Sequence record: NC_061445.1
DNA: 64,000 nucleotides
Strand: one strand, 5' to 3'
Part shown: piece by piece, positions 1 through 53,265 of the stretch
Layout: each line of letters begins with the position of its first letter
How positions within the stretch are numbered: the stretch's first letter is position 1
Made by a program: the position numbers and the translations under genes
Notes under the pieces: generated by a model
Databases searched by the model: none
What the model was told of the DNA's origin: nothing
What the model saw: only the letters and a program-made list of their open reading frames with translations

Positions 1-14
1 CGTGCAAGTCAACA

Positions 15-2231
15 ATGACCATGAGTATCATGGCGAGCCTGATTCGTCTGCATTACTCTGGCATTAGTGTAGTGTTCGACTACGAAGGTTCAACCGATGC
101 AGAGTACGTTGCTGGTCAGTTGAAGACGTTCGGCGTTAAAGTTGATCCGAAGACAATCTTCGGTGTGCGTGACGACGAAGACGGTAGTTGGATCGTTAAG
201 CCTAAGATCCGTTACTATGCACCAGACAACGGTGAGCGCTTCTTCGATTATATGTCGATGCTGCGTCGTCGTCTGCCTGACAAGATCGTTGAGAAAGACG
301 GCTCTGCGTACTACATCTTTGAGAACAACAAAGAGAACGCGAAGAAGCTGGCTGGCAAGTACGACAAGAAATGGTTCAGTCGTAACAACCAGTTCAAAGT
401 CGCTGCGCCTGACGGTCACATGCAAGCGATGGTTATCGTTGACTCTTATCCGGCAATGCTGCCTGATCAGGTCGATGATGATGACGGTTCGAAAGCAATG
501 GCGCTGCAAGCGCGTATGTTCTCTGACGGCATCAAACGTTTCCGTGGCGGTATGCGTCGTAAGATGATGACCATCGTTGGCGTTAACCAGTTGCGTCAGA
601 AACCTGCTGTAATGTTCGGCAGCCCTGAGTATGAGCCCGGTGGCGATGCGTTGAAGTTCTACTGCTTCGACCGTGATACTCAGATTCGTACTAATCACGG
701 TGTGCTGACTGCACCTCAGATCAAAGAGCTGTTGGACAACGGCACTGAGGTGAGCGTTGAGTCGTTCGATGGCTACCAGAAGATCAATGGTGCGTGGAAA
801 GTTGAAGACGCTCCGTTCCCAATCGAACTGAACGCTGGTGGACACGCATACGTTGGTAGCGCTGAACACCGCCAGTTTACTTTCATGTTCGACACAACTG
901 CTGATGGTATGGCCGTGCTGCGTCCTGAGTGGAATACGCTCAACCAGCTTGCTCAGTACCCAGAGCAGAAAGGTCAGTATGCAGCACTGCGCGTACCGCC
1001 TGTGAAAGAACTGAAAGAGAACGTGCCTGATGCGTTTGATGAAGCAAGCCAGCTCGTTAGTAACCTGCTTGGTAATGCTGACTTCGAAAGCGTACAACTG
1101 CCTCTGGCATCTTTCGGTGATACCACGTTCGCAGCGAACGTACTGACCACCAATATGATTGGCGATCAGGACGATGTTCACACGTTCTCTTTGTGGGCAC
1201 GTCACCTGCTGTCTATCGGTATCTACGCGTATGCTGACGAAAGCGGTCTGCACATTCCGGGTCTGAACAAACATGAACTGGAAGCGGCTGTAGCGCAAGA
1301 CGAACTCGGTGCGTTTGCTGGTATCAGCTTCGAAGCCACCAGCCGTCAACGTCAAACGCAGATGCTGTCTGTTATCGCTGACGTGTTCCCTGAACTGACT
1401 CGCTACGTTCTGGACTATCAGTTGCAGACCGGTCAGGATAAAATCTATCTGGGCCCAGAGCAAGACTTTGCTCAGGCACTCGATCTGATTCTGCACAAAC
1501 AGATTGAAGGTTACGATGACCTGTACGATCTGCTGATGCAGCAACTGGCCTACGTTGAAGACTGGTACAACTTCGACAACTCAATCGTTCCTGTTCCGTT
1601 CACGCTGAAAGCTATCGTGAATCCGACTGAGTTCTGGGATGTGAACGTTGCCGAAACGTCTGTTGTGATCACTAACGGCTTCGTCAGTCACAACTCTGAT
1701 GTGCGTGTGCGTCTGGCCTCTCGTGCTGTTCCTGAAGGTTGGCCGAAACTCAAAGACGCTCCAGGCATCGTTGGTGAGAAGTCTGTTACTGTCGAAGGCG
1801 GCACTGACCGCTATCGTTTCATTGCTGCTAAGACCATCAAGAACAAGATGGGTGGCATCCCTAACCAGAGCACTTGGCTGCGCTTGTGGGAAGCTGACGG
1901 CAACGGTGAAGCGCGCGGCTTTGACCCAGTGTTTGATACGTGGCACTATCTGAAAACTCTCGGCCTGATTAACGGTACTCGTAAGAGCTTCAAGATCAAA
2001 GCGCCTTGCCCGCTCGCATCTGATGTTAAGATGGACTGGGATGACTTCCGTACTCTCATCAACGGCAGCAAGACTCAGGTTGTCGATGTGTGTAAGAAAC
2101 TGAAAGTCAAACCTGCTGGCTTGCGTCTGTGGTGCTTCAAGTTCGTGCAGTCCACCAAGGGCAACGAGATGTTGAAGAACGCTATCAGTAAGTCGGCGAA
2201 GTCTTCTAACGACGATGACGACGACGAGTAA
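15..2231 (+). CDS. recA: RecA/UvsX-like recombinase containing an intein (5' end probably outside the window)
   Basis: Walker B-like VIVDSYPAM, then QARMFS, VGVNQLRQK and YEPGGDALKFY|S-DVRVRL matching RecA-family motifs. No Walker A visible and the frame is open to the window edge. Acidic C-terminal tail NDDDDDE. Confidence 0.9.
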   Translation: MTMSIMASLIRLHYSGISVVFDYEGSTDAEYVAGQLKTFGVKVDPKTIFGVRDDEDGSWIVKPKIRYYAPDNGERFFDYMSMLRRRLPDKIVEKDGSAYYIFENNKENAKKLAGKYDKKWFSRNNQFKVAAPDGHMQAMVIVDSYPAMLPDQVDDDDGSKAMALQARMFSDGIKRFRGGMRRKMMTIVGVNQLRQKPAVMFGSPEYEPGGDALKFYCFDRDTQIRTNHGVLTAPQIKELLDNGTEVSVESFDGYQKINGAWKVEDAPFPIELNAGGHAYVGSAEHRQFTFMFDTTADGMAVLRPEWNTLNQLAQYPEQKGQYAALRVPPVKELKENVPDAFDEASQLVSNLLGNADFESVQLPLASFGDTTFAANVLTTNMIGDQDDVHTFSLWARHLLSIGIYAYADESGLHIPGLNKHELEAAVAQDELGAFAGISFEATSRQRQTQMLSVIADVFPELTRYVLDYQLQTGQDKIYLGPEQDFAQALDLILHKQIEGYDDLYDLLMQQLAYVEDWYNFDNSIVPVPFTLKAIVNPTEFWDVNVAETSVVITNGFVSHNSDVRVRLASRAVPEGWPKLKDAPGIVGEKSVTVEGGTDRYRFIAAKTIKNKMGGIPNQSTWLRLWEADGNGEARGFDPVFDTWHYLKTLGLINGTRKSFKIKAPCPLASDVKMDWDDFRTLINGSKTQVVDVCKKLKVKPAGLRLWCFKFVQSTKGNEMLKNAISKSAKSSNDDDDDE
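663..1694 (+). mobile_element. Intein (344 aa) in RecA with a degenerate LAGLIDADG-like interior
   Basis: Begins CFDRDTQIRT (Cys1, block A) and ends ITNGFVSHN followed by Ser+1. Removing it restores ALKFY-SDVRVRL. Confidence 0.93.
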
Positions 2232-2235
2232 CACA

Positions 2236-2265
2236 CGCGGGAGGGCTTCGGCTCTCCCATCTTTT
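2236..2265 (+). terminator. Intrinsic terminator
   Basis: GGGAGGGC-TTCG-GCTCTCCC followed by a T-run. Confidence 0.75.
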
Positions 2266-2281
2266 GTTTGAGGAGAATGTA

Positions 2282-2710
2282 ATGCGCACTCAAATCTTTA
2301 CCGCTGATATCCTTAATCTGGAAACAGTGACTGTCAACGAAGAAGACGGTAGTGAAGTTCGTACACCCACTATCGTGCCTAACGTTGAAGGCGAACCTGA
2401 GTTTAACATCTACACCATTCAGTCTCTGATTCAGTCAACAACTACCGGCGAGCCTGTGTCTGACACGCGCCTGATTGTGTTGATCACACCTGACCTGCTG
2501 GCGGGCTTCTCTACTAACGGTCTGGAAAACTACTTCGACCCTATTGCTCGCGTCGAAGATATCGCTGCTGGTAACGTCGGTAGCGTCCTCGGAAAACAGG
2601 TTGTTATCAACGACAAGTCTGTTGCGCCGTGTCTTGCAGTAGCAAACGTTAGCGATGTTGAAGAGGGTGTCACAATCCTCGCGTACAGCGCCGCGCAGGT
2701 AAAACTGTAA
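2282..2710 (+). CDS. Hypothetical protein
   Basis: ORF with GAGGAG SD. Confidence 0.75.
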   Translation: MRTQIFTADILNLETVTVNEEDGSEVRTPTIVPNVEGEPEFNIYTIQSLIQSTTTGEPVSDTRLIVLITPDLLAGFSTNGLENYFDPIARVEDIAAGNVGSVLGKQVVINDKSVAPCLAVANVSDVEEGVTILAYSAAQVKL

Positions 2711-2713
2711 ATA
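2705..2713 (+). promoter_or_regulatory. CTGTAAATA motif (candidate late/middle promoter)
   Basis: One of 11 mostly intergenic + strand copies. Confidence 0.5.
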
Positions 2714-2765
2714 CTGATTAACAACCGAACACAAATGCTGTGTGTAGTCTCGCCCGTCTTGGGCA

Positions 2766-2796
2766 TGGGAGAGCCGGATGGCCTCCCATTTTTTTA
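2766..2796 (+). terminator. Intrinsic terminator
   Basis: ATGGGAG...CTCCCAT followed by T7. Confidence 0.7.
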
Positions 2797-2811
2797 TTCT
2801 GAGGAATTTTT

Positions 2812-3885
2812 ATGAGCCAGCATAAAACTGAATTGTGGGATGAAGCTCTAGGCGGTGCACTGTCTGCTAAATACAATCAAACGGCTGAGTACGTCCCCGT
2901 GATTCGTAGCGTCAATGCACGACTCGTCGAGGAGATTGCTCCATTCCGTAGACGGCTTGTTGCGGGGTTTGAAAAGTTCCTGACTGACGCTAAAGGTAAG
3001 ATTGAATACTTCGGTCCTTCACTCGAACAGTTCGCGTTATGGCTACAGCCGAACGGTAACTTCCAAAAGTCTGACTATGATATTGCTGTATTGTCTCATA
3101 CGCATACCCATTTCTTTTGGCAGTATACCCGAGCAGAGTTTGAGTTCGAAGAAGAAGTGATGGAGCATATCATCGAATCAGAAACACCTACCAAGATACC
3201 AGCGTCAATCATCAAGCAACTTCCTTACTGGACTCAATGGGTACGCGCACCTATAGGCGTTGATATCACAGGGGAACCTGCTGCATCTCAAGGCGCTAAC
3301 CTGCACTTCTTTGGCGCTCTTGTGAGTTATTTGCGCTACGACAATAAAACGTTTCTGAATCTAAACGCGCCTGTGTTTACTGAGCGTGGGGATTGGAAAG
3401 ACCCAGCGCTTATGGCTGCTAACGTTCGCGTGTGCATTGATGATGACATTGACTTCACCGACCCGAATACAATCATTCCTTATATGCAGGGTACGCATGA
3501 AAATTTGAGTGAGGAAATGAAACAAAAGATATTCGGTGCTGTGCGTGAATGGGCGCCGAAGATGATCAGTTGTGTGTTGTTCTTGTGCTCCCAGCAAGAA
3601 GCAGTATACAAACAGGGTGCAGTGCAGCAAGCAGTTCGCCGTAAAGGCAACAACTATAAAATGCAAGCGCTGTCCAAATCGAAACAGTTTACTGTCGGCG
3701 GCGAGTTCGTTGACCAAATACGTGAGTACGAAGCTGACGCTATGCGCTCTGCATCATGGCAGCGCCGTGCTCATATCAGACGTGGGCACTATCACCACTT
3801 CTGGACAGGGCCAAAAACAGGTGAGCGTAAACTCATTTGCAAATGGCTTCCACCGAGCATTGTTCGCGGTACTGCCGCAGAGTAA
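2812..3885 (+). CDS. AcrVA2/FinQ-like protein
   Basis: Collinear motifs against the AcrVA2 sequence as recalled: WQYTRAEFEFEEE, IPASIIKQLPYW, VLFLCSQ, FTVGGEFVDQIREY, RAHIRRGHYHHFWTG..KWLPPSIV. Confidence 0.75.
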   Translation: MSQHKTELWDEALGGALSAKYNQTAEYVPVIRSVNARLVEEIAPFRRRLVAGFEKFLTDAKGKIEYFGPSLEQFALWLQPNGNFQKSDYDIAVLSHTHTHFFWQYTRAEFEFEEEVMEHIIESETPTKIPASIIKQLPYWTQWVRAPIGVDITGEPAASQGANLHFFGALVSYLRYDNKTFLNLNAPVFTERGDWKDPALMAANVRVCIDDDIDFTDPNTIIPYMQGTHENLSEEMKQKIFGAVREWAPKMISCVLFLCSQQEAVYKQGAVQQAVRRKGNNYKMQALSKSKQFTVGGEFVDQIREYEADAMRSASWQRRAHIRRGHYHHFWTGPKTGERKLICKWLPPSIVRGTAAE

Positions 3886-3933
3886 TAGCTCTTTTCTAAA
3901 CTCCACGTATGGGCGTTATGCCCGGAGGTTAAT

Positions 3934-4692
3934 ATGTCCCGTGTACAAACTCTATGGATTCCAGATATGGAATCGTATGAACCTTATGTCCGTTCTCTGT
4001 GTCATATGGCGCGAGCGCTGGAAAACAATGGCCTGAACTATGGTAAGTTGAAACGCGTAGTTGTTATCGGCCTGTCGAAACGCAGTGTTGAGTCTTACGT
4101 TAAACAACTGCTTAACTCTAACACTCTGCCTAACACTCTCGTCTGTTTCGGTATCGACGAAGCGCCTGACAGCCACAAAGAATTTTCGTTCATCGGCTCG
4201 CATGTTGTGTTGATGCACGACCTGACGTATGCCGGTGACAATGCGATGCACCGTGTGTCTCAACGTGTTCTCGAAATAATCCTGAGCTTGAAGCCTAAGC
4301 CACAAGACACTGAGCTTAAAAACGGTGCGCTGTCTCTCGTATACCAGAATCCTATGCTCTGGTCATTCATACGTGACACTGGCTCAAGTATGTACGGACA
4401 CAGCCGTCACATTCAATACGCAGAAGGGATCGCATCGACTGTCGGCGTAGATCAACTAATGTCCTGCGAGAACAACGAGGACTTCCATAAGCTCCATGCG
4501 CAGACAATCACAATCGGCCAAGAGTTCTTCTACGTTAAGACCTCAGAACTGCTGTCAAGGTTAGGCAGTCTTAGTTGGTCGCTCGGCTGCATAAACAGTG
4601 AGTTCAGAGCCGACTATAAAATCGTGCTGCATGAGGATCTGCGCATACCAATCTTCGAAGAATTTCTGTTAGGTGACTTCGGGGGCTTTTAA
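3934..4692 (+). CDS. Hypothetical protein
   Basis: 252-aa ORF with GGAGG SD. Confidence 0.75.
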   Translation: MSRVQTLWIPDMESYEPYVRSLCHMARALENNGLNYGKLKRVVVIGLSKRSVESYVKQLLNSNTLPNTLVCFGIDEAPDSHKEFSFIGSHVVLMHDLTYAGDNAMHRVSQRVLEIILSLKPKPQDTELKNGALSLVYQNPMLWSFIRDTGSSMYGHSRHIQYAEGIASTVGVDQLMSCENNEDFHKLHAQTITIGQEFFYVKTSELLSRLGSLSWSLGCINSEFRADYKIVLHEDLRIPIFEEFLLGDFGGF

Positions 4693-4765
4693 GAATATTC
4701 TTAGCCTGCTCTCTAATTTCTATATGTTGGCAAGTAGTGCTGACGTATCGTTATTGGAGAATAAC

Positions 4766-5026
4766 ATGTGCGAACGTAGCCATCTGCGGTTGAAGTACCT
4801 CGCACGGTCATCGAACTGGTGCAATAATAAAGTAAACGCTTGTAGTGAGCGGAAGGCGAGAGATGTTCAGTGCGAAGAATTTTTGGCTGCGACCAAAGAT
4901 TGTCGTTCGATTCAGAACTCGTCCAGTGTTGTTTCTTTCTTCTCTGGCCAAGAGCTTGTTGGTCAGGCTATCTGGCGTGAGATAGAGGGAGACAACATGC
5001 TTCAATTCCGGTTGCTACTTGCTTAA
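4766..5026 (+). CDS. Hypothetical protein
   Basis: ATG 4766 preceded by the SD hairpin GTTATT-GGAG-AATAAC. Confidence 0.6.
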   Translation: MCERSHLRLKYLARSSNWCNNKVNACSERKARDVQCEEFLAATKDCRSIQNSSSVVSFFSGQELVGQAIWREIEGDNMLQFRLLLA

Positions 5027-5032
5027 CGACAA

Positions 5033-5068
5033 AAGGGCTTTCAGAGAAAATCTGATGGCCCTTTTCTT
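5033..5068 (+). terminator. Intrinsic terminator
   Basis: AAAAGGGC..TCAGA-GAAAA-TCTGA..GCCCTTTT. Confidence 0.7.
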
Positions 5069-5121
5069 ATTCTATTGCTAATTTTCATCGACAAACACAC
5101 TAACCGAATCTGAGGTAATTT

Positions 5122-6762
5122 ATGTCTTTGATTTCACTTAAAGGCGTAGCGTCCACATCTGCCCCTACCAAAGCGCAGAAAGATGCTGCTGTCTATATGT
5201 TTGGCTCTAAGGGCCATTCAATCGTTGCTGTGCTCGACAAATTCAGTCGTGCGAAAGAGCTACGCACCGCACACGTTGACGGTATGCTCAAGATGATGAA
5301 AGAAGGTGAAGATGACGAGATCATCAAGTTCACCGAGTCTGCTGCGGGTCGTAAGGCAATCGCTGCTGCTAAAGCATTCGCCGTAGCTAAAACGCTGACC
5401 GCCAGTATCAAAGCGCTGAAACTGATTCGCGTTCCTGTTAAGTGGGTAGCTGGTCATTCAGACGCGGCTGCTGCGCGTATCACCGAGACAAAAGAGATTC
5501 GTGCTCGCAAGTCTGCTGCTGGTAAAGCAGAGAAGCCGATCAAGCTCGACAACCCGGGCGCACCTGAGTCTACCACAGTAGACAACAAAGTGATTGACGC
5601 GAAGAAAGGTTCTGCAACACCGGCAACCGATGACGTAAGCGTGATTGACCGTGTAGTCAAAAACCCTTCTATCAAAAACACGTCTATCATTATCCGCCGC
5701 CTCTTTAAAGGCCATGAGACTACATCTTCATTGATGTTCCGCAAGGGTGTCGGTACTCAATCGACGCTTCTGGGTCTTGGGTCTCACGGCAACGGACACG
5801 AGACTGGTGCCGGACTGCTGGTGGCTGCATTCAAAGCTACCGGCATCAAACCTAAGTGGTACTTAGCTGATGCTGGCGATGCTGCTTTCGATTTAGGTTC
5901 TGCTGCAAACGTAACGAAAGTGTTCAAGTGGTTGTCTGCGAGAAAGCCGGGCGAAACTTTTGCTGCCACTGCGAAGCTGCCTAAATCTGGTAAAGTACCT
6001 GCAGGTGCAACGCGTGTTGTGCGCGATCATATCGGCAAGCCTGAGCCTGTGTCGAAAGAAAAACTCGCTTCTTCGACGTTTGATTTTGTAGGCGTTAAGT
6101 CTGCTGCTGGTGGCGCACTTAAACTGCAATTCAAACAACCGAAGAATGACAACGAATGGTCACTGACAATCCGTCGTGATAAAGACTCTATTACGAGTGA
6201 CCACGATGGTTCTTCTGGCTACCAGACTGCTGAGTCTTTCCTGCAACGCGGTATTACTGCAATCGGCGGTTCTGTTGTCGCAGAGCACCAGCAGCCGGGC
6301 AGCGCGATCTTCCAGTTTGCGAGCGAAGATCAGGCTAAAGCATATATTGCTTGGCTTAAAAAGCAGAAAGCTCAAACCATCAACTACAAAACTGAGCCTA
6401 AGATCACGGTAACCAAAGCTGCTTCATACACACCGTCAGGTAAAACTGATGTTTCGCTGGTGGATGAAATGGCAGAAGTACCTGCACGTAAGATCGCAGC
6501 CAAACCTTTGCAGGCGCGTGAAGAATATTTCAATGCTCTGCGCAACATCCTGCAAAACAATCTGCCTAAGTCAGAAGTGTCCGCAACATCTAACGGTGTT
6601 GTCGTAGCGAAAGGCACCAAGATGTACACGATTCGCCTCGACGATAAATCGTGGACAATTCAGACTGGCGTTACTGGCAAGACAAAACGTATCGGCGCAA
6701 CGTTCGATATCGTTGATCTGCTCGGCATGATCGACAAGTCAATTCTGAGTCCCAAAGCGTAA
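5122..6762 (+). CDS. Lys/Ala-rich hypothetical protein (possible virion/internal protein)
   Basis: 546-aa ORF with GAGGT SD, basic composition, flanked by terminators. Confidence 0.7.
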   Translation: MSLISLKGVASTSAPTKAQKDAAVYMFGSKGHSIVAVLDKFSRAKELRTAHVDGMLKMMKEGEDDEIIKFTESAAGRKAIAAAKAFAVAKTLTASIKALKLIRVPVKWVAGHSDAAAARITETKEIRARKSAAGKAEKPIKLDNPGAPESTTVDNKVIDAKKGSATPATDDVSVIDRVVKNPSIKNTSIIIRRLFKGHETTSSLMFRKGVGTQSTLLGLGSHGNGHETGAGLLVAAFKATGIKPKWYLADAGDAAFDLGSAANVTKVFKWLSARKPGETFAATAKLPKSGKVPAGATRVVRDHIGKPEPVSKEKLASSTFDFVGVKSAAGGALKLQFKQPKNDNEWSLTIRRDKDSITSDHDGSSGYQTAESFLQRGITAIGGSVVAEHQQPGSAIFQFASEDQAKAYIAWLKKQKAQTINYKTEPKITVTKAASYTPSGKTDVSLVDEMAEVPARKIAAKPLQAREEYFNALRNILQNNLPKSEVSATSNGVVVAKGTKMYTIRLDDKSWTIQTGVTGKTKRIGATFDIVDLLGMIDKSILSPKA

Positions 6763-6767
6763 ACAAA

Positions 6768-6795
6768 GAGGGTAGCTTCGGCTGCCCTTTTTTAC
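6768..6795 (+). terminator. Intrinsic terminator
   Basis: GGGTAGC-TTCG-GCTGCCC followed by T7. Confidence 0.85.
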
Positions 6796-6860
6796 GTCTG
6801 ATCGACCTGAAAAGTGACTGTGACTTAACTCAAACTGAGACTGCCCAAGATCTGCGAAGT

Positions 6861-6915
6861 CTGCAAATAACTGGTCAAAATAGCTCTTTATACGCACACG
6901 CGCCCGTGATACAAT
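6861..6915 (+). promoter_or_regulatory. Boxed extended -10 promoter
   Basis: CTGCAAATAACTGGTCAAAA, TGGTCA 6872-77, 32 nt, TG-a-TACAAT 6910-15. Confidence 0.75.
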
Positions 6916-6968
6916 ATATGCAGACGCTACACAACGTAGCACATACAACTAATGCTGAGGAGCATACA

Positions 6969-7295
6969 ATGAAAACTTACAACGCTGAGAACAAACACGA
7001 AATCGAAGAATTTGCGGCTGAGATCAACAAACGCATGAAGCGTACCGATGCGAAAGCAATCGTGACCAACGCCTACGCAGACGACGAGTTTTGTTTGATG
7101 GTTGTTGAGTGGGACGCAGAACTGAATGAAGAAACTGGCGAGTGTGGTTACTTCATTGATATCCCGAGCGAAGACGGCGAGAAGCATCGCATCACTTATG
7201 CAGGTGTGCCTCACCCCGAAGATAAAGAGTACGTGTTCTACTTCGACATGTACGAAGAATTGATGCCTGAGATTGAACGTCTGAATCTCGCCTAA
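6969..7295 (+). CDS. Acidic hypothetical protein (probable early gene)
   Basis: SD hairpin ATGCT-GAGG-AGCAT; downstream of a promoter. Confidence 0.8.
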   Translation: MKTYNAENKHEIEEFAAEINKRMKRTDAKAIVTNAYADDEFCLMVVEWDAELNEETGECGYFIDIPSEDGEKHRITYAGVPHPEDKEYVFYFDMYEELMPEIERLNLA

Positions 7296-7348
7296 GCAAA
7301 TATCTGGTCAAAAGCGCCGTTGCTTGAAAACGTGTGACGGCGTATTAT
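7296..7348 (+). promoter_or_regulatory. Boxed sigma70-like promoter
   Basis: TGGTCA 7305-10, 32 nt, TATTAT 7343-48; TTGCTT -35 at 17-nt spacing. Confidence 0.65.
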
Positions 7349-7397
7349 GTAATCTCTAGCGCAATGACGCGCTCAACACTGAAAGAGGCAACAAACA

Positions 7398-7637
7398 ATG
7401 GCTGAGAAACAAGTAGTTCTTGATCTGATCGCAGACGTAGCATCACCTACAGAAGTTATCTTCGAAGACGGTCAATCGTCTAATGAGTGGCTCGCACCGT
7501 ACGATTTGCGCCTCACCGTGTCACTGCACACTGGCCCGAACGGCTACCCCGAAGTGAACATCATCGGCGATGAAGACGATCTGAAACGCTTCTTGTTTGA
7601 ACACGACTTTGAAGGTTCAGTCGAAGACGTGAAGTAA
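7398..7637 (+). CDS. Hypothetical protein
   Basis: 79-aa ORF with GAGG SD. Confidence 0.75.
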   Translation: MAEKQVVLDLIADVASPTEVIFEDGQSSNEWLAPYDLRLTVSLHTGPNGYPEVNIIGDEDDLKRFLFEHDFEGSVEDVK

Positions 7638-7645
7638 GTTGTTTG

Positions 7646-7673
7646 AGCGGGGCTTCGGCCTCGCTTCTTTTAT
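7646..7673 (+). terminator. Intrinsic terminator
   Basis: GAGCGGGGC-TTCG-GCCTCGCTT followed by T-rich sequence. Confidence 0.7.
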
Positions 7674-7694
7674 TCTGCCGAAGAGAAAGTAACT

Positions 7695-8201
7695 ATGAAG
7701 AATCAATATCTCGTTATTCGCATGAGTGCCGTTGACATATACGACCGTACATTTCTAATGCGTGGCTTCAATATGAAGCGCATCGAAAAAGTTATCGGCG
7801 TTATCGCTGTCGTCGGTGAAGGTCTGCTGACTTCTGATTCTAAGATGTACCATCTGTCTCGCGTCAACATCGATCTGTTGGCGTCTGATACACAGCAGAG
7901 CTGGGGACGCCTGAGCTGGTCAAGCATTGACGCCACGCTCATTGATTCTGGTATGCGCCGTCTGCCGCCAGAACTGCTTGATAGAATTAAGGCAATGCGC
8001 ACTAATCGCATCTATTACGGCGTCGATACGACGATACCAGAAGCGTTTCGTGACTGTCACACTGAGTTGGTGTATACGCCAAGCGCCGCTCGCAAGTTAG
8101 TAGATCGCGCCGAGAAACTTGCTGCGTTGAGTGAGTACAGCGTAGAAGATATTATCGCTCACCTGAAAACGCGCATTGAAGGCGTCACTATAGCTTTCTA
8201 A
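7695..8201 (+). CDS. Hypothetical protein
   Basis: ORF; start uncertain. Confidence 0.65.
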   Translation: MKNQYLVIRMSAVDIYDRTFLMRGFNMKRIEKVIGVIAVVGEGLLTSDSKMYHLSRVNIDLLASDTQQSWGRLSWSSIDATLIDSGMRRLPPELLDRIKAMRTNRIYYGVDTTIPEAFRDCHTELVYTPSAARKLVDRAEKLAALSEYSVEDIIAHLKTRIEGVTIAF

Positions 8202-8263
8202 TCGTTATCTGACTGTGGCGTTACGGCGCCACGTACTTCACAACTTAATTGAGAGAACATGCC

Positions 8264-8878
8264 ATGAACCTCGTAACAACTTTCTTCGTCAAACGCTCTT
8301 ACGCTTCACTCGCCGCTGGCAGTTTTGCAATCGACGCCAAACACGTTCAAGAGCTGATTGAATGTGAGTGCATGATCGTACACGTCGATACAGGCCATCG
8401 TAATGCGTTCGCCTTGAAGAACATCGCTCTGACGCCTATCGACGAGCACAACGTGCGCGTTACGTTCGACCCTCTGACAGACGCACACGCAATGCCGTCT
8501 TCTGTCATGCCGAAAGATCTGAAAGGCAGTATTCAAGTCTATGGCATGTACAGTGAAGATCTGAAAGACGTGCCACGCTTCGACGTGTCAAACGATGCGT
8601 CAGGCAACAACCCAAACATTCTGTCACTTGATCTTGAATGCCGCCAGCGCCTGATGCAGTATCACGGTGGCATGTGTACGCTGACCGAACTGTGCCTGTC
8701 ACTCTTTGAGAAAGGCATTCACATTGTCGATATTCATCACAACGTCAAACAGCACGATCACGGCGTCGGCGTTTTCACTCAGCGCTATCGCACTGCGTTT
8801 GAGCTGAACAAAGACAACGGCATTAAACGCCACAACGATGATTATCCAGTTCTGGCGCGTATGACTGTTTTAATGTAA
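8264..8878 (+). CDS. Hypothetical protein
   Basis: ORF with SD-like sequence. Confidence 0.7.
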   Translation: MNLVTTFFVKRSYASLAAGSFAIDAKHVQELIECECMIVHVDTGHRNAFALKNIALTPIDEHNVRVTFDPLTDAHAMPSSVMPKDLKGSIQVYGMYSEDLKDVPRFDVSNDASGNNPNILSLDLECRQRLMQYHGGMCTLTELCLSLFEKGIHIVDIHHNVKQHDHGVGVFTQRYRTAFELNKDNGIKRHNDDYPVLARMTVLM

Positions 8879-8887
8879 ACACACAAT

Positions 8888-8913
8888 GCCTCGCAACGTG
8901 CGGGGCTTTTTCT
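8888..8913 (+). terminator. Intrinsic terminator
   Basis: GCCTCGC-AACGT-GCGGGGC followed by T5. Confidence 0.65.
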
Positions 8914-8927
8914 ATTTGGAGAATGTT

Positions 8928-9188
8928 ATGGTATACGAACGCGAAGAACTTCAAGACATGCCGCTTGATGTGCTCTACCATCTGGCGTGCGCTAAAGGTC
9001 TGCTGGACGATCTCGACGATGAAGACGATGTGCCTGATCGTGAAGTGCTGGTGGGCATGATTCTTGATGCGCAGAGCGAAGATGAACAGGCAGAACAAAA
9101 CGCTGCCGACAAACAACGCGCCGAAGATGATCGCGATCCGCGTATCAATCGTCGTGATGGCCAAGACGGATCTGAGGACTACTGCTAA
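8928..9188 (+). CDS. Small acidic protein with a HeH (Rho-N-like) module
   Basis: LQDMPLDVLYHLACAKGL...DREVLVGMIL plus an acidic tail. Confidence 0.65.
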   Translation: MVYEREELQDMPLDVLYHLACAKGLLDDLDDEDDVPDREVLVGMILDAQSEDEQAEQNAADKQRAEDDRDPRINRRDGQDGSEDYC

Positions 9189-52380: not shown

Positions 52381-52446
52381 CTGTAAATATTAAGTATGCA
52401 GCGAGATAAAAAGTTCTCGCTGCCTGTCTCTCGAAATCTGTAAATA
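52381..52446 (+). promoter_or_regulatory. Tandem CTGTAAATA motifs around a hairpin
   Basis: GAAATCTGTAAATATTAA twice (52381, 52438); GCAGCGAG..CTCGCTGC between them. Confidence 0.6.
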
Positions 52447-52491: not shown

Positions 52492-53265
52492 ATGGCTAAA
52501 GCAACCGCAAATACCGCAGCAATCGTTCTGGCTAAAATGCTGGGCGTAGTTATCGAAAGCGCCGATGCGAAAGAAATCGCAGCAATTCTGAAAGAAGCCG
52601 GTCTGACTGTCTCTGGCGGTAAAGTGGTAAAAGCTGAAAAAGGCGGTAAAGCTGCTAAAGGCAAAAAGGCTAAAGCGCCTACCGTTGCTGAAATCGTCGC
52701 TGCTGTTAAAGACGAAGAAGAACTGGACATCTCCGGCGTTGACGAAGATACTCTGCGCGAAGCAGTGATCAAAGCCAAGCTGTCTACCAAGAAAAAGGCA
52801 GGCGCGCTGGACGAAGATGAACTGCGCGAACTGCTGAACGACAACCTGGGCGGCGAGTCCGAAGAGGACGAAGACGACGAAGAAGAAGAAGAGGACGAGG
52901 ACGAAGACGACTCGGACGACGAAGATGAAGACGGCGACGACGACGAAGACGAAGACGACGACTCTGATGATGAAGAAGAGGACGAAGACGACGAAGACGG
53001 CGACGACGAAGAAGAGGACGAAGACGACGAGGACGAAGATGATGAAGACGCCCTCGACCTCGACGACCTCGACAAGAAAGAGCTGTTAGCTCTGGTCCTG
53101 GAACACAAGCTCGCGCCGAAGAAAAAGGCGTCTAAGATGGACGAAGACGAACTGCGCGAACTGTGCGAATCTCACTTCGGCGGTGACGACGAAGAAGACG
53201 ACGAAGACGAAGATGAAGACGACGAAGACTTCGACGACGAAGACGAAGACGAAGACGACGAGTAA
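52492..53265 (+). CDS. Poly-acidic protein with two HeH modules
   Basis: VDEDTLREAVIKAKLSTKKKAGALDEDELRELL and LDKKELLALVLEHKLAPKKKASKMDEDELRELC, separated by about 65 nearly pure D/E residues. Confidence 0.85.
   Translation: MAKATANTAAIVLAKMLGVVIESADAKEIAAILKEAGLTVSGGKVVKAEKGGKAAKGKKAKAPTVAEIVAAVKDEEELDISGVDEDTLREAVIKAKLSTKKKAGALDEDELRELLNDNLGGESEEDEDDEEEEEDEDEDDSDDEDEDGDDDEDEDDDSDDEEEDEDDEDGDDEEEDEDDEDEDDEDALDLDDLDKKELLALVLEHKLAPKKKASKMDEDELRELCESHFGGDDEEDDEDEDEDDEDFDDEDEDEDDE

Follow-up and report, generated by a model that had tools for sequence, protein, structure and literature searches.

gp247 of Erwinia phage pEa_SNUABM_3, an AcrVA2/FinQ-family protein at a slot with discrete allele classes

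To our knowledge, AcrVA2 is so far the only case in bacteria in which recognition of a nascent polypeptide by a protein brings about the loss of the mRNA for that polypeptide. We know of thousands of homologs in its family and of no target among them but Cas12a, F transfer genes being only loosely implicated in the case of FinQ. Here we describe a member of this family, gp247, in a stretch of 64,000 nucleotides (the window) from record NC_061445.1, the genome of Erwinia phage pEa_SNUABM_3. The locus alone leaves that picture of the family unchanged; what our analysis adds is that near-isogenic natural isolates carry discrete allele classes of the gene, with boundaries of exchange that can be defined. 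The best overall explanation, to which we give a probability of roughly 0.54, is a two-part AcrVA2/FinQ-family protein that would act on a target other than Cas12a and whose body would be exchanged between phages.

In AcrVA2, the substitutions H286A, R288A and H291A abolish mRNA downregulation with binding retained, and W79A and D89A reduce activity (Marino et al., 10.1101/2022.11.29.518452). The same authors reported ~1,800 AcrVA2 homologs encoded by plasmids and megaphages, "typically in the absence of Cas12a", reported that FinQ has an HxR motif and lowers F transfer-gene mRNA, and already proposed targets other than Cas12a for the whole family, megaphages included (10.1101/2022.11.29.518452). 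Because that proposal is family-wide, a reading of gp247 as aimed at something other than Cas12a is a published hypothesis applied to one more genome.

How does gp247 compare with these systems? AcrVA2 (Moraxella bovoculi prophage; structures 7CI1/7CI2) belongs to the same family and has the same three-part, full-length fold; it has ~322 residues against the 357 of gp247, which keeps counterparts of W79, H286, R288 and H291. Both are encoded on mobile elements, AcrVA2 on a prophage and gp247 on a lytic jumbo phage. Unlike AcrVA2, gp247 has a disordered N-terminal extension of 22 residues, has no adjacent acrVA1-like or aca gene, and occurs in phages of a host without reported Cas12a. FinQ, a fertility inhibition protein of IncI-like/F-like conjugative plasmids found on more than 500 plasmids, is homologous to gp247 over residues 129-348, whereas the N-terminal 128 residues of gp247 do not align to it. 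The plasmid-borne FinQ acts on F transfer genes; gp247 is not carried on a conjugative plasmid, its gene lying in the replication/recombination gene region of a 266-kb Caudoviricetes genome. Other jumbo-phage proteins (PHROG 6160; Special G; RisingSun; Dickeya JA13; Klebsiella ~300-kb phages) belong to the same family by sequence and predicted fold and are likewise found in large lytic phages of Enterobacterales; outside the three genera that share the gene order described below, often only the C-terminal third aligns to gp247. Finally, phage specificity cassettes such as receptor-binding tail-fibre tips and immunity regions show the same exchange of diverged alleles at conserved flanks, with purifying selection on each allele. 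This last likeness is one of evolutionary pattern, with no sequence or functional relationship to gp247.

gp247 is a member of the AcrVA2/FinQ family

The window begins at base 202,176 of the pEa_SNUABM_3 record, and its first 9 kb are 100% identical to that phage (NC_061445/MZ443770), a lytic jumbo phage of 266,175 bp (Alexandravirus, Caudoviricetes) isolated on the fire-blight bacterium Erwinia amylovora. pEa_SNUABM isolates are given below as S-numbers (S3 for pEa_SNUABM_3, S23 for pEa_SNUABM_23, and so on). The gene and the parts of it that matter to the argument are:

2812-3885, + strand: gp247, AcrVA2/FinQ-family protein of 357 residues with ATG start, class C allele (open reading frame call and translation)
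3118-3120, + strand: codon of W103, counterpart of AcrVA2 W79 (HMMER alignment, 102 relatives)
3766-3882, + strand: C-terminal beta module, residues 319-357, presumed effector part and 3' homology arm
3772-3789, + strand: codons of the H321-x-R323-x-x-H326 motif, inside the C-terminal beta module

The same coding sequence is annotated in NC_061445 as gp247 (YP_010301360, "hypothetical protein"), and the sequence-only reading of this DNA had called the frame identically. That reading had also likened five blocks of the protein to AcrVA2. All five are in the translation, and all fall inside the stretches that a homology search aligns: phmmer of gp247 against 177,635 PDB sequences gave AcrVA2 as the sole match (7CI1_A; 7CI1/7CI2; E 2.4e-8), in two collinear stretches (query residues 87-145 and 254-351). 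A profile of eight close relatives matched AcrVA2 with E 9.6e-10. FinQ was reached with the window's own protein as well. In a tblastn search of PLSDB plasmids, gp247 matched 563 records, 545 of them conjugative; among the records listed, matched genes are annotated "finQ: protein FinQ" (E ~1e-5, 26% identity over residues 129-348), and our comparison with FinQ is made through these annotated plasmid matches. PHROG 6160, whose function is unassigned, matches gp247 with E 8.5e-52, and the precomputed Pfam assignment PF26125 "AcrVA2-like" is carried by P0001, a protein 95% identical to gp247, and by five other relatives. A Pfam-A scan with our local copy returned PF26125 neither for gp247 nor for the homologs that bear this label, the model being apparently missing from the copy. 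In a profile search the whole family comprised 2668 clusters (50% identity) at E<=1e-3, of which only ~15 gave full-length matches that include the N-terminal 80 residues; tblastn against phage genomes matched 87 records.

The predicted fold leads to the same protein. An AlphaFold2 model of gp247 built on a 102-sequence alignment has a mean predicted local distance difference test score of 87.7 and a predicted template modelling (TM) score of 0.87, and only residues 1-22 are disordered. Searched against the PDB with Foldseek, it matched only the AcrVA2 chains 7CI1/7CI2 (E 2e-11 to 2e-10, probability 1.00, TM 0.48-0.59 over 347-358 aligned columns), the next match having E 0.33. In a viral structure library, Foldseek matched the model to 11 uncharacterised phage proteins, including one of Erwinia phage RisingSun. 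Sequence, profile, fold and the conservation of functional residues firmly support gp247 as a true member of the AcrVA2/FinQ family; it adds one more member to a known family, and its annotation as "hypothetical protein" is corrected to AcrVA2/FinQ family.

The HMMER alignment sets W103, E113, H321, R323 and H326 of gp247 against W79, D89, H286, R288 and H291 of AcrVA2 (the numbering of the PDB chains is the native numbering plus 1). Among 102 diverse family members, P138, H321, R323 and H326 are the sole invariant columns, and W103 is conserved in at least 90%. Could the shared fold and motif serve other biochemistry, for example direct binding or cleavage of nucleic acid without a link to translation? 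AcrVA2 itself has no assigned biochemical activity for the H-x-R-x-x-H module, and our searches detected no known enzyme fold, which leaves room for such a role. However, the family shows no variation at the residues on which the AcrVA2 phenotype depends, an argument for a common activity, and neither family scans nor Foldseek matched a nuclease or nucleic-acid-binding family or fold. We regard this explanation as highly improbable.

Two relatives bear labels of their own. The RisingSun family member (NC_042018, 128482-129135) is annotated "putative mycothiosynthase", probably a misannotation, and the Special G homolog (KU886222, 189886-190260) is already labelled "putative protein FinQ".

Allele classes and exchange boundaries

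The version of gp247 found in the window (99.7-100% identity) occurs only in pEa_SNUABM_3, _20 and _40; all other phage matches are below 60%. The gene nevertheless has a fixed address. The gene order SSB, UvsX/RecA, a ~140-residue gene, a ~235-residue gene, the AcrVA2-like gene and a ~255-residue gene is common to Alexandravirus, Yoloswagvirus, Sasquatchvirus and metagenomic contigs, and an AcrVA2-like gene occupies this slot in every genome examined of the three genera. We compared the slot protein of 12 phages from these genera and found at least three allele classes:

Class A: S23, Alexandra, AD1, S1, S22, S35 and S2; 67-96% mutual identity
Class B: S33 with S32 (94%), Y3 (56%) and Yoloswag (40-42%)
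Class C: S3, S20 and S40

Alleles of different classes are 27-35% identical, and the class C allele shares 29-35% identity with each of the others at the slot. The classes are shuffled among phages and do not follow the UvsX/phage tree: S33 and AD1 have UvsX proteins 98% identical and slot proteins 30% identical, and the corresponding values for S1 and S32 are 96% and 29%. The divergence is unevenly spread along the protein. Against the 11 other alleles, the mean identity of the S3 slot protein is 0.11-0.29 over residues 1-318 and 0.69 over residues 319-357. Divergence is thus confined to the presumed recognition part while the presumed effector motif stays constant, which marks the former as the part evolving as a specificity module.

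The limits of the exchanged segment can be read from near-identical isolates. When window positions 1-9000 were compared with pEa_SNUABM_23 (L002) by blastn, 1-2795 and 3787-7883 aligned and nothing aligned at 2796-3786; pEa_SNUABM_23 and _31 are 98.6-98.7% identical to the window over the two aligned parts. The segments concerned are:

2796-3786, + strand: exchanged block, ribosome-binding site and codons 1-325, with no nucleotide-level homology to pEa_SNUABM_23
2705-2797, + strand: conserved leader of ~90 nucleotides, comprising the CTGTAAATA motif, two small hairpins (2729-2743 and 2752-2764) and a main hairpin with T-run; presumed 5' homology arm

At the protein level, S3 and S23 are 100% identical in UvsX, 99% in gp246, 33% in gp247, 99% in gp248, 100% in gp249 and 100% in gp250, and over window positions 9001-59000 the two genomes are 98.7-99.4% identical at 99-100% coverage. 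The body of the gp247 gene is the outstanding difference between S3 and S23 in 59 kb. These isolates thus provide a clean natural comparison, being ~99% identical over the 59 kb examined with slot proteins only ~33% identical. The 5' boundary lies directly after the T-run of the leader and the 3' boundary at codon 326, within the conserved motif. Because the boundaries fall there, the likely arms for recombination are the conserved leader on the 5' side and the conserved C-terminal codons on the 3' side.

Have these alleles diversified rapidly? The class C protein of a metagenomic contig (L016, ENA ERZ1757361) is 95% identical to that of S3, with a synonymous divergence (dS) of 0.33 and a ratio of nonsynonymous to synonymous divergence (dN/dS) of 0.07, whereas the genes flanking it are 68-83% identical to those of S3, with dS of 0.66-2.1. 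The dN/dS of 0.07 means that strong purifying selection acts on the class C allele, and the dS below that of the flanks means that the allele has passed from one diverged backbone to another. Rapid diversifying selection was considered within class C and rejected on the same ratio. What emerges is a set of old, discrete classes that are maintained and exchanged, and not fast diversification.

One natural relative departs from this pattern. In L018 (GCA_007314735.1, AAHPOS010000001.1, 266,303 bp), an Alexandravirus-like, genome-length sequence in an assembly labelled Salmonella enterica serovar Infantis, the class C gene is fused to its downstream neighbour by a single in-frame deletion and the effector module is gone; neither a frameshift nor an internal stop was seen in the fused gene. 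The idea of a frameshifted copy in P0002 was rejected in favour of a single in-frame deletion that joins the gene to the one downstream.

These data bear on the possibility that gp247 is a conserved housekeeping regulator, shutting off one host protein or timing phage expression, with the classes as old, equivalent lineages shuffled neutrally. Occupation of the same slot in every examined Alexandravirus, Yoloswagvirus and Sasquatchvirus genome and in metagenomic relatives, the high conservation of the leader and strong purifying selection would all be expected of such a regulator. Yet between-class identity of the body is 11-29% while flanking genes are 99-100% identical in the same phages, and in two diverged backbones the class C allele, with its low dS, has a younger common ancestor than its flanks, which points to selected transfer and not to neutral drift. 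The loss of the effector module in L018 indicates in addition that the gene may be dispensable, unless that sequence reflects an assembly error or a defective phage. We consider such a housekeeping role unlikely.

The genes around the slot are mosaic too. For gp246, identity is 83% with the S33 homolog, 49-56% with most other homologs in Alexandravirus and 25% with that of Y3; gp248 is 80% identical to its S32 homolog and 58-63% to others; and the neighbouring ORFans gp246, gp248 and gp250 are all mosaic among related phages. Neither gp246 nor gp248 has an allele pattern linked to the AcrVA2-like classes, and because of this independence of the neighbouring mosaics we regard the stretch after UvsX as a recombination-rich accessory region. 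We also considered, and rejected, a co-evolving partner for gp247: gp246 and gp248 do not track the classes, and the ~235-residue gene is absent from S3, S20 and S23, yet present with a class C allele in L016.

Possible mechanism and targets

What might a constant motif on an exchangeable body do? By analogy with AcrVA2, the variable body (residues ~27-318: a helical N-terminal domain, a central beta domain and a long helix) would bind one particular polypeptide, probably during its emergence from the ribosome, and the constant C-terminal beta module with H321-x-R323-x-x-H326 would trigger loss of the mRNA under translation. The target in this host would be not Cas12a but some other protein encoded by the host or by a competitor. 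In three genera the slot is fixed, lying 3' of the SSB and UvsX genes and behind a conserved leader; whole recognition bodies would be swapped there by homologous recombination, with arms provided by the leader and by the codons for the C-terminal motif, and swapping would give rise to discrete allele classes, each kept by purifying selection. The combination of a constant motif, a variable body and whole-body exchange fits a design of specificity plus effector. The sequence-only reading had proposed that gp247 silences a host target other than Cas12a by the mechanism of AcrVA2, which is plausible and consistent with all our results; another defence protein, the example it gave, may be that target and is only one option.

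A more far-reaching proposal is that the slot works as a natural re-targeting system, in which each class would aim the same translation-coupled silencing of mRNA at a different host or competitor protein. We consider this possible and, on balance, doubtful. If it were true, pairs of the S3/S23 type would differ mainly in the protein silenced, and their comparison would reveal the first targets other than Cas12a. The question of the target is approachable by infection profiling of existing isolates.

That the probable host lacks Cas12a had likewise been proposed beforehand, and the literature supports it: in E. amylovora, two arrays flank a type I-E cas cluster and a remnant type I-F array is present as well, its cas genes vary little between isolates, and Cas12 is not mentioned in the study of its CRISPR systems (PMC9004355), host genomes themselves not having been searched for Cas12a here. 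On this literature, the Cas12a expected in the host of a type V-A anti-CRISPR is not found. A strict anti-CRISPR could instead have been re-targeted to a Cas protein of the host type I-E system, or of the I-F system of other Erwinia hosts, lowering its mRNA. gp247 belongs to an anti-CRISPR family, the type I-E system of E. amylovora is active, and these phages also infect E. pyrifoliae, with genus relatives carrying type I-F. But the features of an acr locus are missing: Pfam and PHROG scans of the neighbours and the annotation of the record showed no aca-type regulator or other acr gene near gp247, and the neighbours have no family matches. Moreover, most homologs occur where the cognate Cas protein is absent (Marino et al.), so anti-CRISPR activity is not the family's default role, and three allele classes are hard to explain with host cas genes that vary so little. 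Such a re-targeted anti-CRISPR appears to us decidedly unlikely.

Alternatively, gp247 could take part in a FinQ-like conflict between mobile elements and silence a gene belonging to a competitor, whether plasmid, prophage or co-infecting phage. The homology to FinQ, which lowers F transfer-gene mRNA, speaks for this, as does the abundance of the family on conjugative plasmids (545 of the 563 matched plasmid records), and discrete classes shuffled among phages that co-circulate in the same waters fit inter-phage competition. However, no candidate competitor target was found, the slot lies among replication and recombination genes and not in a recognisable exclusion module, and no specific sequence feature sets such a conflict apart from the explanation that we prefer. 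We hold it to be unlikely.

Several observations weigh against the preferred explanation, a two-part protein with a non-Cas12a target and exchanged bodies. All three classes occur in Korean phages isolated on E. amylovora, and polymorphism of the target within E. amylovora has no obvious power to explain the classes, because a single host species with little-varied cas genes is involved. The presence of the gene in the slot of every genome examined is core-like more than it resembles accessory counter-defence. The structural alignment of gp247 with AcrVA2 has ~15-16% identity and a root-mean-square deviation of 9-10 Å; because of this deviation, the model suggests that the domains of the two proteins are oriented differently. 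The counterpart of D89 is a glutamate (E113) and not an aspartate, a conservative change. Scans of gp247 with NCBIfam, PADLOC and the local Pfam-A copy gave no relevant match, the Pfam result being treated as a gap in the library. Finally, a 2026 review treats the link from peptide recognition to mRNA decay as unresolved even for AcrVA2 (PMC13131331).

Leader, transcription signals and neighbouring genes

The leader and the genes on either side of gp247 contain the following features:

2282-2710, + strand: gp246, upstream neighbour, 142 residues, without family assignment
2705-2713, + strand: CTGTAAATA motif, candidate phage promoter element, overlapping the gp246 stop codon
2765-2789, + strand: terminator-like hairpin, GC-rich, 7+3 bp with one bulge and a GGAU loop, T-run to 2795
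2801-2805, + strand: ribosome-binding site GAGGA of gp247
3934-4692, + strand: gp248, downstream neighbour, 252 residues, without family assignment
5122-6762: gp250, neighbouring ORFan
2705, 9445, 27707, 48330, 52381, 52438 and 59405, + strand: copies of CTGTAAATA in the window

The window has 7 copies of CTGTAAATA, exclusively on the + strand, where 0.32 would be expected, a ~20-fold over-representation. The copies at 52381 and 52438 form a tandem pair ahead of an open reading frame at 52492, and the motif also occurs at L001:234, 41 nucleotides upstream of a gene annotated as a sigma factor. In 10 of 12 related phage loci, a copy precedes the AcrVA2-like gene at a short distance; it overlaps the end of the upstream coding sequence in a reading frame that differs between phages. 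Because the overlap is in different frames, the motif appears to be kept as a nucleic-acid signal, and it is probably a phage promoter element. The genes that follow the other copies are almost all annotated "hypothetical" and give no temporal class.

The leader is conserved near base for base upstream of the homologous gene in 13 loci that cover all three allele classes (the window, L002-L004, L007-L013, L015 and L016). The RNA of 2714-2812 folds with -29 kcal/mol (z -2.1). A scan for consensus terminators missed the hairpin at 2765-2789 because of its bulge. In Y3 and in the metagenomic contig L015, other bases restore the pairing of the main stem, and RNAalifold found 17 consensus pairs in the leader, 1 of them compensatory, a weak test as the sequences are too alike; an Rfam search of 2600-4000 found no family. 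As to RNA structure, we claim a conserved terminator-like hairpin and go no further.

Is gp247 a transcription unit of its own? It had been proposed to be one, set between a terminator and a CTGTAAATA motif. The hairpin with its T-run at 2765-2795 is real and the motif is enriched as described; the nearest copy (2705-2713), however, is located upstream of the hairpin instead of beyond the gene, and the gene has no terminator behind it. The gp247 ATG at 2812 comes ~15 nucleotides after the T-run, with no sigma-70-like site in between. Between the gp247 stop codon and the ATG at 3934 there is no hairpin with a U-tract, only a 4-bp hairpin; gp248 starts 48 nucleotides after the gp247 stop, and the next strong terminator downstream on the + strand is at 7645-7666. 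Because the motif precedes the hairpin and no terminator precedes gp248, it is more probable that gp247 opens a longer unit than that it forms one by itself, and gp248 is probably co-transcribed with it. The order of the motif and the terminator-like hairpin suggests a promoter followed by an attenuator; alternatively, the leader may be the terminator of the upstream gene behind a conserved motif.

Upstream of gp247 are genes annotated as sigma factor, SSB and UvsX-like recombinase, and the surroundings otherwise consist of ORFans. A Pfam scan matched none of seven neighbouring window proteins, nor the ~235-residue gene of Alexandra, and a PHROG scan of the same proteins gave a single match, of one window neighbour to a PHROG of unassigned function. 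The gene context thus points to no partner or target of gp247. The ~235-residue gene is missing from the S3/S20/S23 clade, where it would lie between 2710 and 2812; elsewhere this ORFan stands between the gp246 homolog and the AcrVA2-like gene (L003:3639-4361, L004:3653-4354, L016:4247-4954). In S1, S32 and L016 it has a copy of CTGTAAATA on both sides, and these flanking copies may have mediated its loss. In the literature on this phage group, we found no paper that mentions the gp247 gene.

The start codons of several homologs look mis-called (Alexandra_251, L003:4402-5454; AD1_242, L004:4531-5457; P0001, 373 residues). The annotated TTG start of the Alexandra gene falls within the conserved leader, that of AD1 lies ~25 codons 3' of an ATG with a good ribosome-binding site, and the 16-residue extension of P0001 translates across the terminator hairpin. 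The records that match the first 9 kb of the window include one phage with host Salmonella Typhi and one with Alcaligenes faecalis, which hints at relatives of this region outside the phages of Erwinia and Dickeya.

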